A stretch of DNA of 64,000 nt from Hemiscyllium ocellatum (taxonomy: Eukaryota): positions 19,798,341 to 19,862,340 of the forward strand of contig NC_083409.1 of assembly GCF_020745735.1 (NCBI RefSeq), written 5' to 3'. Of this stretch, positions 1 to 21,423 are shown piece by piece. The notes under the pieces were generated by a model. The model was not told the origin of the DNA, made no database searches, and saw only the letters and a program-made list of their open reading frames with translations. Position 1 is the stretch's first letter. The number at the start of each line of letters is the position of its first letter. The translations under genes were made by a program, and so were the position numbers.

Positions 1-160
1 CTTCTTTCACTTCCTCTTTTGGTGAAGTTTCAACCTTGTGCTCTGGCAGCCTTTGCAGTTATTTTTTACACTGGGGCTTTCTGCTGTGGTCAGAAGTTCT
101 AATAATAAGTGTCCAATCAGTGACAATCACAGCAGCTAAGAGCTGTCAGGACTGAGAAGC
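1..160. promoter_or_regulatory. Conserved non-coding element, copy A (inverted paralogue of 21264-21423); candidate B-cell enhancer
   Basis: 10 mismatches in 160 bp against the reverse complement of 21264-21423. Contains GAGGAAGTGAAAG on - (4-16), matching the Ets-IRF composite GGAAnnGAAA, plus TGTGGT (85-90) and CCAAT (113-117). Function is inferred. Confidence 0.55.
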
Positions 161-164
161 CCGG

Positions 165-600
165 ACTCACTGTGAAACATATTGGGAAGATCAAAGCCAT
201 CCTCTTCATCTCCTGGTCCAAACTCCATCCCTCTCCCTGGGGGTCTGCTGCACAACCAGACTCTTTACAAATGTGGCCACATCTCTGAGAATGATCTGAG
301 CCCTATATCCTCCATATTGTACAGACCAGCTACTGAAAATCTCAATCATGTCTGTGGGACTCCAAACATGACCATTCCAATGTTGTGCTAGCACACATCA
401 CAGCAACCGCCCTCCATAACCTTCAGTTCATCCCAAATTCTGATGCCTGTATCCAAACTTACATCAAGTCCTGTTCCCCCAACCCCCTGCACCCTGTGTC
501 TACATTGGCTCCTCTCCAGCAACTCGTTGATTTCCAAGTTCTCATCCTTGTTCGCAAAACCCTCTCTGCCCTCCACCCTCCCTACCTCTGCCTCAGTCAG
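165..600 (+). mobile_element. L2-type LINE ORF2 C-terminal fragment
   Basis: Degenerate translation resembles the L2 ORF2 C-terminus (LHNLQFIPNSDA..., FQVLILVRKTLSALHPPYLC). Paralogous to 20560-21260. Confidence 0.6.
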
Positions 601-809
601 TGTGATCAGCAATCTTGGATGTACAGCTCTCTGTTTCTTCATCCAAGTCATTGAGAAATATCATAAAAAGCTGAGCTCCCAGCACAGATCCCTGGGGATA
701 CCACTATTCACATCTTCCTCACTGGAGGATGCACTCACTATTCTTCCTCTCTGCCTCCTACCTCCAAACTAATTCCTGACCAAAGACAAATACTTTTCTC
801 TAATTGGTT

Positions 810-1835
810 TGATGGTAGAAAGCAGTGGGTAACAGTGGAAGGATGCTTGTCAGACTAGAGGCCTGTGTCTAGTGGAGTGCCTCAGGGCTCGGTCCTGTGT
901 CCATTACTCTTTGCTAACTACATCAATAATTTGGATGAGAATCTGCAAGGCATGATTGGTAAGTTTGCAGATGACATTACAATAGACATTGAGGGAGGTT
1001 ATCAGAAATTGCAGCAGGACCTTGATCAGCTGGAGAAAGGACAAAATGAGTTCAGAGAGATAATTGTGAGGTCTTGCACTTTAGGAAGTTTAATCGAGGT
1101 GGGAGTACCATGGTGAATGGTAAGGCCTTAAGGACTGTAGTGAAACAGAGAGATCTTGGAGTTCAGGTACACGGTTCTCTGGAAGTTGAGTCACAGTTCG
1201 ACAGGGCAGTGAGGAAGGCTTTTGACACACTGGCCTTCATCAGTCAGGGCATTGAGTATAGAAGTTGAGAAGTTATGTTACCATTGTACAGAACGTTGGT
1301 GAGGTCGCACTTGGAGTATTTGGTCACCTTTGTTATAGGAAGGACATTATTAAACTGGAACAATTTCAGAGGAAATGTACAAGCATGTTGCCAGGACTCA
1401 ACAGTCTGAGTTTTTGTGAGAAGTTGGACAAGCTAGGACTTTTTTCGGAGAATGTAGGAGACTGAGGGTTTTTTTAAAGTGTATAAGACCTTGAGAGACT
1501 GGATAGGGTGAATGCACTCAGTCTTTTTCCCAGGGTTGGGGAATTGAGGATGAGATGGGTTTTAGGTTAGAGGAGAAAGAATAAAAGGGAACCTGAGGGA
1601 CAACTTGTTTACACAGAGGGTGGCACACATATGGAATGAGCTGCCAGTGGAAGTGATTGAGGTGGGTATAATAACAACTTTAAAAAGGCATTTGGACAAA
1701 TACATGGATAGGAAAGGCTCCGAAGGATATGGGCCAAGTGCAGGGAAATGGGGTTAGCGTGGATGGACATTTTGGTCAGCATGGACCAGTGTGGACCAAA
1801 AAGCCTGTCTCTGTGCTGTAGGACTCGATGACTCT
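810..1835 (+). mobile_element. CR1 LINE 3' fragment
   Basis: RT motifs SGVPQGSVLCPLLF and KFADD; ends in the typical CR1 tail (...ctctgtgctgtaggactcgatgactct). Confidence 0.85.
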
Positions 1836-1879
1836 TTGACTCTATAATTCCATAGGTTTCCATATTTACAAACAATATC

Positions 1880-17880: not shown

Positions 17881-17999
17881 CATTCTGGATCTTTGTACAC
17901 AAAGGAAAACTCAAATACATTTGAAACATGTCGGGACGACAGGGTATAGACTGAGGGCAGAACTGAAGAAAATTAGCTTTATTCGGGAAATGGTTTTGG

Positions 18000-20320
18000 A
18001 AAATTTATGGGATTAAAGTTTGATAAATCCGCAGGAACCAATAACCTACATTTCAGATTACTTCAGGAATTGCCCAAAAAACTTTGGGAGCATTGGTGTT
18101 CAAGATTCTATTGATTCTGGAACTTTCCCAGTGACTGGAGAGTTGCGAATGTAACATCACTGTTTAAAATGGGAGGGAGAGAGAAAAGTGGGCAACCTGG
18201 ACCAGTCAGCCTGACATTGGTACTGGGAAAAATACTCAAGTTCGTTGTGAAAGATTTAATCACTGAGCACGTGGAAGACAGTGATAGGATTAGACAGAGT
18301 CAGCATGGTTTGTGAAAGGGAAATCATGCTTAACAAATTGACTGGAATTGTTCGAGATTGTAATGAGCGGATTTGACAAGGGGGAGCCAACGGATGTGGT
18401 TTATCTGGAACCTTCAGAAGGCTTTTATTCAGTCCCACAGTAGAAATGAGCGTATAAAAGTAAGACTCATGTGACTGGGGGCAGTGTACTGACATGAATA
18501 GAGAACTGGTTGGCAGGCTGGAAACAAAGAGTTTCTGAAAGGGTACCACAGGCCTGGATCCTGCTAGTCATATATTTGTTCATGGTTTAGATGAGGGAAC
18601 TTAAGAGTAATATCTCCAAGTTTGCAGATGACACAAAGCTGGATGGGAGAGGGAGCTGTGAAGAAGATGCAGAGATGCCTGTGTCCGTGTATACCAGTCA
18701 CTGAAAGTCAGCGTGCAGGTGCAGCAGGCAGTGCAGAAGGTAAATGATATGGTACCTTTATAGTGAGAGGATTTGAGTACAGGATCAGGGATGTCTTGCT
18801 GTAATTGTATGGGGCCTTAGTGAGTCCACACCTGGAATATTCAAACCAAAACTGGTTCAGTGACAGGAGACAGAGGGTGGAGGCAGAAATTTGTTTATGT
18901 GACTGGGCCCAGTGTGCAGTGGGATACCACAGGGATCAGTGCTGGGTCCCTTATTGTTCAGGATGTATTGAAACAATGAAGATGAAAATGTGAGAGGTGA
19001 GGGGTGGGGTGAGTGGATGGTGACTGAGTTTGTGGATTCAATGAGGTTTGGCAGATGGTTGACAGTGAGGAAGAAGGTCTTAGGTTACAGGAGGATCTAA
19101 CTGGATTGGTCAGAGGGGAAGATGGAACTTACCCCTGATAAATGTGAGGTGATGAACTTTGGACGATGTAACAGGTGAATAAAGTATTAATGAAGTCATA
19201 TGGGAAACTTGCCTTTATCATTTCAGGTACAGATGAGAAGATCAGGGAAGATATGTTGGAGGTATACAGAATTTTTGTTAGGCCACAGCTGGAGTACTGT
19301 GTGCAGTTCTGGTCACCACGCAATCGGAAGGATGGGATTGTACTGGAGGGGGTGCAGAGAATAGTCACCAGGATGTTGCTTGGGATGAAGCATTTCAGCG
19401 ATGAAGAGAGGCTGGATAAACTCGGGTTGTTATCTTTGAAGCAGAGAAGGTTGTGAGGACCTGATAGAGGTGTAAACGGGTATGAGGGGAATAGACAGAA
19501 TGAATAGAAAACAGTTGTTCCTCTTCTTCGGAGTTGGCACACATTCATTGTGAAAGACAGGAGCTTCAGAGGGGATTTGAAGAGGAGGGTGTTGGGGGTC
19601 TGGTTTGCACTGTCTGGGCTGGTAGTTGAGGAGGACTTTAAAAATTAATTGGATTAACCCTTGAAATATCATAACATTTAAAGCAATGGGCCTTGTGTTG
19701 GAAAGTTGGATGAATGCAGGTTTACTGTAGTTTGGATGGTACAGGTACAATGGGTCGAAGGGCCTCTTCTGTACTGTGCGATTTATGATTGTATTGTGTG
19801 CAGTTTTGGTCTCCTTATCTGAGGAAGGATGTTCTGGCTGTGGAGGGAGGGCAGTGAAGATTTACCAGACTGATTCCTGGGATGACAGCACTTAGATCTG
19901 ATGAGAAACTGGATCAGTTAGGATTATATTCACTGTAAGGTAGAAGATTATGGGGAGTCACACTGAAAACTCTAAAAACCTAACAGGACAAGGCAGGATG
20001 TTCCTGATGATGAGGGAGTCCAGAATCAAGAATTAAAGTTTAAGGATACGGAAAAGGACATTTAGGGCTGAGATGGAGAGAAATGTTTTCATTCTACAGG
20101 AAGCCTGTAGAGGTTTCTGTCACTGAAAGCAGTTCAGCTCAAACCACTGAATGTTTTCCAGAAAGGGCACGATACAGTTCTTAGATCAAAGGGATCAAAG
20201 GTTATGGGGATGAAGCAGGAACAGGCAACTGAGTTGGATGATCAGCCATGATCAGATTGAATGGCAGAACAGGCTCGAAGGGTTGAATGGCCTATTCCTG
20301 CTCCGGGTTTCACTGTTTGA
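18000..20320 (+). mobile_element. Stacked CR1 fragments
   Basis: GKSCLTN, KFADDTKL, VRPQLEYCVQFWSP motifs; CR1 tails at about 19780 and 20310. Confidence 0.8.
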
Positions 20321-20559
20321 GAGATTGTTCATCAACGTGGAAACATATTGAATGAGAGAAAAACATTTGCCTTGGGTTAGGAATTAGTTTGGAGATAGGA
20401 GACAGAGTGAGGGAATAATGTGTGTGTCCTCCAATGAGCAAGAGATGAATAGTGGTGTGCCCAGGGATCCATCCTGTGGCTTTAGCATTTCACAGTATTT
20501 CTTCATGTCTTGGATGAAGGAATAGAAAGTCAGATATCCAAGATTGCTGACCACACTGA

Positions 20560-21260
20560 GTGAGGCAGTTAGGAGGAGGTTACAGAGATGGGGAGGGTGG
20601 ATGGACAAGGAGGGACTTCAGAACAAGGACGATAATTTGAAAATCGAGGTGTTGGTTTGAACTGGGAGCCAATGTCGCTCAGTGAGGATGGTGGGGGATG
20701 GGGATGGGATTTGTTGCGAGTTCGGATAAGGGCAGCAGAGTTTGGGGTGAACTGAAGTTTACGGAGGGCAGTGGCTGAGATGTGGCCCAGGACAACATGA
20801 GAATGATCACGTTTGGAGTCCCAAAGCAACGGCTGGGACTTTCAGTGAGTGATCTCTGTGCTGTGGAGGGTTTGGGGCTCAGATCAGTCTCAAAGATGAG
20901 GCCAGGATTGTAAGGAACCTGGTACTAAATAAAAGCTGAAAAAAGCTGCAGTTGCTGCAAATGAGAAACAAATACAGAAATTGCTGGAAAAGCTCGGCAG
21001 GTCTGGCACCATCTGTGGAGAGAAAGCAGAGTTAACATTTTGGGACAAGTGAACCTTCTCAGAACTGTTCTGAGGAAGGGTCACTTGACCTGAAAGGTTA
21101 ACTCTGATTTCTTTCCCCAGATGCTGCCAGACCTGCTGAGGTATTCTGTTTTTGTGAAGAGTCTGGTTGAGCAGCAGACAGTGCTCAAGGAGAGGGATGG
21201 AGTTTGTACTGAGAGCTGAAGAGGATGGCTTTGATCTTCCCAATGTGTTTCCCAGTGCGC
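20560..21260 (-). mobile_element. L2 fragment (paralogue of 165-600) carrying an inserted palindromic Penelope-end dimer (~20965-21150)
   Basis: ORF MGRSKPSSSALSTNSIPL... mirrors MGRSKPSSSSPGPNSIPL... at 182; inverted repeat centred on cagaac-t-gttctg (21066). Confidence 0.65.
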
Positions 21261-21263
21261 CTG

Positions 21264-21423
21264 GCTCCTCAGTCCTGACTGCTCTTAGCTGCTGTGATTG
21301 TCACTGATTGGACACTTATTATTAGAGATTCTGACCACAGCAGAAAGCCCCAGTGTGAAAAATAACTGCAAAGACTGTCAGATCACAAGGTTGAAACTTC
21401 ACCAAGAGAGGAAGTGAAAGACG
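21264..21423. promoter_or_regulatory. Conserved non-coding element, copy B, ~4.5 kb upstream of the kappa leader; candidate enhancer
   Basis: GAGGAAGTGAAAG at 21408-21420, ACCACA (Runx-type) and ATTGG are all conserved in copy A. Function is inferred. Confidence 0.55.

Follow-up and report, generated by a model that had tools for sequence, protein, structure and literature searches.

Inverted upstream flanks of kappa light chain clusters in the shark Hemiscyllium ocellatum point to a probable head-to-head neighbouring cluster

We analysed a stretch of 64,000 nt from Hemiscyllium ocellatum (contig NC_083409.1, positions 19,798,341 to 19,862,340), referred to below in its entirety as the window, which carries immunoglobulin (Ig) kappa light chain genes in clusters of variable (V), joining (J) and constant (C) segments. 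The left end of the window (copy A, 1-6769) and a right arm (copy B, 18200-21423) lie on opposite strands. They appear to derive from the 5′ flank of a kappa V-J-C unit, in two copies that have diverged and face in opposite directions. Copy B is the flank of an intact plus-strand cluster, with its leader at 25950, a V segment with a 12-nt-spacer recombination signal sequence (12-RSS), a J segment with a 23-nt-spacer signal (23-RSS) and a C exon at 36.2 kb. Copy A would be the flank of a left-pointing unit; its leader, V and J should then lie on the minus strand, ~4.5-6.5 kb beyond position 1 to the left. We regard the existence of this minus-strand leader-V-J as probable. The kappa unit, flank included, seems to have been amplified many times, with neighbouring units often head-to-head. 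The array would have grown by inverted duplication of whole units, followed by insertion of long interspersed nuclear elements (LINEs) and miniature inverted-repeat transposable elements (MITEs).

Two inverted arms and their insertions

Self-BLASTN of the window revealed three main blocks of inverted homology between copies A and B. Positions 3-271 matched 21421-21151 (90.1%, E 1e-100), 255-805 matched 20923-20351 (72.7%, E 3e-89), and 1841-3068 matched 20359-19203 in one high-scoring segment pair (73.7%, E 0). Repeat finding together with self-BLASTN placed these blocks in one collinear opposite-strand chain. This agrees with the first-pass annotation of the sequence, which had aligned position 1 with 21423 on the opposite strand and had proposed a self-comparison as the check. 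Because position 1 pairs with ~21423, the homology is interrupted only by the window edge and continues past it. Another block that keeps this order and orientation (6559-6769 with 18409-18200, 79%, E 3e-47) extends the arms to at least 1-6769 and 18200-21423; it had no further copy elsewhere in the window or across the ~95 kb of loci retrieved for comparison. The spacer separating the arms is 11.4 kb long and rich in repeats, and self-BLASTN detected no inverted homology in 6770-18199 except repeat-to-repeat matches. For 1-805, no other copy was present in the window beyond the copy B counterpart. Identity between the arms was uneven: 91% over the first 270 bp and ~75-77% elsewhere.

For comparison we used five kappa loci (L001-L005) from an older Chiloscyllium punctatum assembly. 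L001 is contig BEZZ01005289.1, and L003, a more distant kappa cluster, was compared by its upstream flank. None of the five is the window's own region (best identity 92%). The arms and the sequences around them are as follows.

1-271, minus strand: conserved upstream module of copy A, truncated by the window edge; 91% to copy B 21151-21423 and to L001 3262-3536, with flanks at 75-79%
272-805, minus strand: arm block P of copy A; 72.7-74.9% to 20923-20351 and 75.7-78.7% to L001 2466-3033
806-1840, plus strand: LINE fragment in copy A only, missing from copy B and L001; open reading frame (ORF) matching RVT_1, imperfect target-site duplication
1841-3068, minus strand: arm block Q of copy A, with a repeat terminus at 2440 and shared flank beyond it; 73.7% to 20359-19203
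3069-6558, no strand assigned: copy A-specific material, mostly minus-strand LINE sequence; ORFs with many repeat matches
6559-6769, minus strand: most distal block of the left arm; 79% to 18409-18200 and 76% to L001 598-784
6770-18199, no strand assigned: repeat-rich spacer without an Ig exon relic (self-BLASTN and TBLASTN)
18200-21150, plus strand: arm blocks of copy B, including a MITE-like insertion at 20924-21150 (self-BLASTN, L001 alignment)
21151-21423, plus strand: conserved upstream module of copy B, with GGAAGTGAAA at 21410-21419 (alignments, probe search)
21424-25949, plus strand: proximal upstream flank of the plus-strand cluster, collinear with L001 3536-10000; the copy A counterpart lies off the window

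The two arms differ by discrete insertions. Segment 806-1840 is a later LINE insertion into copy A, because its ORF 865-1116 matched Pfam RVT_1 (E 2e-8), it had many relatives within the window and it was flanked by an imperfect target-site duplication (CTCTAATT / CTCTATAATT). Its summed contig word depth in public runs was very high. The first-pass annotation had described a CR1 element specific to the left copy at 810-1835; the restriction of the insertion to copy A was borne out, and of the labels "CR1" and "L2" only a LINE with reverse transcriptase is shown. A palindromic MITE-like insertion of ~227 bp (20924-21150) was present in copy B and L001 and missing from copy A. Between 3069 and 6558, copy A carries ~3.5 kb consisting largely of minus-strand LINE ORFs, and the copy B equivalent is only ~0.8 kb (18410-19202). 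The minus-strand ORFs at 3244-4897 had many repeat matches within the window.

Several further observations concern these insertions. The hairpin-forming, self-complementary MITE-like element recurred at 80-91% identity and in both orientations at 7848-7979, 8684-8778, 15222-15357, 33468-33605, 39949-40237 and 53165-53296; the copy at 20924-21150 separates the module from the remainder of copy B. The minus-strand ORF 6114-6659 (181 residues), whose end overlaps the distal arm block 6559-6769, gave a weak esterase-like match to Pfam OSK (E 0.005, below the Pfam cut-off) and may encode the ORF1 esterase domain of a CR1/L2-type LINE. No repeat ORFs were called as genes in L001-L005, and in the protein search no match from read assemblies of this species came close to identity.

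Base composition mirrored the arms: the plus strand was C-rich at 2-8 kb and G-rich at 18-26 kb. Strong strand bias, with GC skew reaching ±0.38 and a corresponding AT skew, tracked the unit structure over 2001-8000, 18001-26000, 28001-36000 and 60001-64000. The sense strand was purine-rich 5′ of V and pyrimidine-rich in the J-C intron, and this pattern was mirrored in oppositely oriented copies. Many GA/CT-rich low-complexity tracts were found near 24.4-26.0 kb and 26.8-26.9 kb.

The arms as upstream flanks of kappa clusters

The leader ATG at 25950 lies 4,527 bp downstream of the end of copy B, which bears out the distance of 4.5 kb given in the first-pass annotation. The Ig features of the window are listed below.

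25950-25998, plus strand: leader exon (direct reading, TBLASTN with shark kappa chains)
26185-26483, plus strand: V exon; Pfam V-set E 2e-15, 88-89% to C. punctatum kappa chains
26484-26511, plus strand: V recombination signal, CACAGTG, 12-nt spacer, ACAAAAACC (direct reading)
26936-26974, plus strand: J recombination signal, GGTTTTTGT, 23-nt spacer, CACTGTG (direct reading)
26975-27009, plus strand: J (direct reading)
~36208-36536, plus strand: C-kappa exon of the plus-strand cluster (C1); 96-99% to Chiloscyllium and Hemiscyllium kappa C domains (TBLASTN)
59792-59466, minus strand: C-kappa exon of the minus-strand cluster (C2); TBLASTN, Pfam C1-set E 3e-21

The plus-strand unit has the composition of a kappa cluster: a leader-V of V-set type, a 12-RSS V and a 23-RSS J on the same strand within ~1 kb, and a single downstream C. 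Its best protein matches were C. punctatum chains annotated as "immunoglobulin kappa light chain-like" (V 88-89%, C up to 99%), followed by those of Hemiscyllium and nurse shark. With eight kappa chains as TBLASTN queries, no Ig exon relic was found in 1-25800 (best match E 0.18).

Comparison with L001 tied copy B to this cluster. L001 was collinear with window positions 17608-27973 at 78-92% identity, apart from repeat insertions. The aligned span starts in the distal upstream region, takes in copy B within 17608-22324, and carries on through the proximal upstream region as far as leader, V and J. Thus, an upstream flank of at least 8.4 kb, with copy B in it, belongs to the kappa cluster repeat unit. 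Within this span, 21424-25949 was collinear with L001 3536-10000 except for two repeat insertions in L001, and L002, L004 and L005 aligned across the proximal part of the same interval. The blocks of copy A kept this order when aligned with L001 (A 266-1 with 3268-3534, A 803-257 with 2466-3033, A 2717-1841 with 1665-2472, and A 6741-6555 with 598-784).

The first-pass annotation had argued that the copies are paralogous segments, since they share junctions between unrelated repeats. Both quoted junction strings were found, at 588-620 / 20568-20536 and 2421-2449 / 19810-19782. The first (~600) was crossed by copy B and L001. At the second, the repeat terminus (A 2440 / B 19791) was crossed into the shared flank only by copy B, L001 (1665-2472) and L003 (3661-4184); four unrelated copies of the same repeat, three in the window and one in L001, stopped exactly there. 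The objection that such junctions might be common to many unrelated copies, itself raised in that annotation, was checked at this terminus and did not apply. From these alignments, copies A and B are confirmed as paralogous genomic segments, each of them apparently the 5′ flank of a kappa cluster unit. In the description "segmental duplication", the paralogy stands; the term is too local, as both copies appear to be the 5′ flank of a many-copy repeat unit.

Identity between copy B and L001 was 86-87%, and copy A was 75-79% identical to either (Jukes-Cantor distance 0.28 for copy A vs 0.15 for B-L001). Judged by these distances and by the shared MITE-like insertion, the history is nested: B and L001 are closer to each other, and A is an older branch. 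Sequence words from 1-3000 also occurred, at shares near 0.2, in public runs of two related organisms, which is consistent with an old duplication.

One observation on subfamilies within the array was made in the proximal flank. L001 (7580-8349), L004 (144-886) and L005 (7471-8319) have one repeat insertion in common, a relative of window 37635-38589 that occupies the position corresponding to 24061. The window's own unit is without it, and the insertion is usable as a marker of unit subfamilies.

The conserved module and the predicted minus-strand cluster

The V-proximal ~270 bp of the arms formed a module that was better conserved than its surroundings. The module copies in A (1-271), B (21151-21423) and L001 (3262-3536) were 91-94.5% alike, and the adjoining blocks 75-87%. 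For A and B, the contrast between module (91%) and flanks (76%) was significant (Fisher p 8e-9), as was the B-L001 contrast (p 2e-4); divergence of the module was about three times lower than that of the flanks. Further copies were found in L003 at 4945-5215 and 1080-1352. An alignment that included these two kept invariant runs, among them a TGACCACAGCAGAAAGCCCCAGTGT-like sequence. The V-proximal end of the module keeps GAGGAAGTGAAAG, which contains GGAAGTGAAA, a form like an ETS-IRF composite; GGAAGTGAAA lies at 5-14 (minus strand) in copy A and at 21410-21419 in copy B. We infer from this conservation that the module may be a regulatory or control element. In four public runs, summed contig word depth, which is not a copy number, was several-fold to tens-fold higher over 1-200 than over 401-600. 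Such high depth is compatible with many units retaining this block at 90% identity or higher.

Within the window, the module probe matched only copies A and B. In all three testable units the module lay upstream of leader-V-J on the same strand, at 4.5 kb (copy B), 6.5 kb (L001) and 4.7 kb (L003); L002 and L004 were too short upstream to be counted. The greater distance in L001 is due to its two extra repeat insertions. In L003, 3.6 kb separate its own module from another one in inverted orientation, indicating that head-to-head pairing of units recurs and that the spacer differs. By the same logic a partner cluster should lie just outside L003; protein searches detected no further annotated kappa gene on that scaffold.

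Since the module lay 4.5-6.5 kb 5′ of the leader in three of three units, copy A is expected upstream of a minus-strand leader-V-J. The first-pass annotation had reached the same expectation from the position of copy B alone, and its logic gains from the finding that copy B is duplicated together with leader-V-J in a flank of at least 8.4 kb. Several points weigh against such a cluster. The predicted position lies wholly outside the window, whose edge cuts copy A. The module rule rests on few loci, and L005, a locus with three assembly gaps and extra repeat insertions, showed no module upstream. Copy A is the most diverged of the three flanks, carries ~4.5 kb of extra LINE sequence and could belong to a decayed unit.

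The same features of copy A, its divergence (75-79% vs 86-87% for B-L001) and its heavy invasion by LINEs, would also suit an orphan relic with no minus-strand cluster after it, its leader-V-J having been lost by deletion, moved off by inversion or left out of the copying; L003 shows in addition that head-to-head arms can be truncated at different points. However, copy A retains the module at 91% identity with all its conserved motifs, which a relic of the same age as the 24%-diverged flanks would hardly be expected to show. We consider an orphan copy A unlikely, though it is the most credible of the alternatives. That A and B are independent insertions of one composite transposable element would account for the 73-77% identity over most of their length, a level also found among members of a single repeat family in the window, and parts of 1841-3068 are indeed repeat-derived. 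This explanation is nevertheless very improbable. Apart from its copy B counterpart, segment 1-805 was unique in the window, clean secondary insertions set A and B apart, and the same block order recurs only upstream of kappa V genes (L001, L003). The homology also passes the repeat terminus into shared flank where unrelated copies stop; only kappa upstream paralogues cross A 2440 / B 19791, and independent composite-repeat insertion was rejected on this ground.

Mirror symmetry could also be produced by an assembly artefact, such as a foldback or a wrong join among repeats of the array. Arrays of many similar copies are easily mis-assembled, and the reads on 1-6000 formed very short, repeat-dominated contigs, none of which bridged the stretch. 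However, a foldback would not produce arms with an identity of only 73-91% and kilobase-scale insertion differences; words of 1-3000 occurred in runs of several samples and of the two related organisms, and a similar head-to-head module pair occurs in an independent older assembly (L003). Assembly foldback was rejected because the arms are too diverged and carry different insertions, and we regard an artefact as the least probable of the explanations. A left-pointing kappa unit beyond position 1 remains the preferred explanation of copy A.

Unit arrangement in the array and its meaning

At the other end of the plus-strand unit, self-BLASTN showed that the C regions form an inverted pair (36011-37115 with 59994-58885, 89.4%), so the C1 and C2 units are tail-to-tail. 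The tail-to-tail duplication also takes in parts of the J-C intron (33605-34527 vs 63494-60605), and the two C exons are 22.9 kb apart. Between them, 54122-54441 (plus strand) gave a 60-73% match to the odd C-terminal 90 residues of the C. punctatum "kappa light chain-like" model P0003. This match suggests that the C-terminal oddity of P0003 is a read-through or a mis-spliced gene model and no real kappa variant.

The multi-cluster (V-J-C) organisation of shark light chain genes has long been known. The number and arrangement of shark clusters were not known as of 2008, and light chain rearrangement in sharks was thought to stay within clusters (PMC3014032). The window unit resembles the kappa / type III (NS4) clusters of cartilaginous fish in its compact leader-V (12-RSS) and J (23-RSS), ~0.5 kb apart, and its single C exon, and it resembles shark kappa chains in sequence (C. 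punctatum 88-89% in V and 96-99% in C; nurse shark 84-92%). It differs in its long, repeat-filled J-C intron of 9.2 kb. Relative to the literature on these clusters, what is described here is the arrangement between units, with a shared inverted upstream flank.

In zebrafish, Ig light chain (IgL) clusters contain segments of opposite polarity and undergo inversional V-J joining between clusters (Zimmerman et al. 2008, PMC3014032). As in zebrafish, several V-J-C clusters in both orientations lie on one chromosome, and inversional V-J joining between neighbours is geometrically possible. However, opposite polarity occurs within zebrafish clusters and inter-cluster joining there was shown by complementary DNA, whereas the units in the window are internally co-oriented and known from genomic DNA alone.

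Taken alone, it matters little and is not surprising that several kb of upstream flank belong to the kappa repeat unit of this shark and that the units stand in alternating orientation. If the predicted cluster exists, the leaders of the head-to-head units would be ~30-32 kb apart. We give little chance to the further idea that head-to-head units, with mirrored enhancer-like modules ~21 kb apart, act as one regulatory and recombination domain. If it were true, a minus-strand V (12-RSS) on the left and a plus-strand J (23-RSS) on the right would provide the geometry for inversional joining, and this would open a zebrafish-like second-chance or editing route between shark clusters, contrary to the textbook view of rearrangement within clusters.

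The findings have more immediate uses. The module stands on the strand of the leader, 4.5-6.5 kb 5′ of it, and this offers a simple rule for finding clusters in fragmented assemblies. Copy A is a third, older paralogue that shows the slower evolution of the module, and it helps the claim that the module is a control element. Together, copies A and B would document how the kappa array of this shark grew, by inverted duplication of whole units and then by LINE and MITE insertion.

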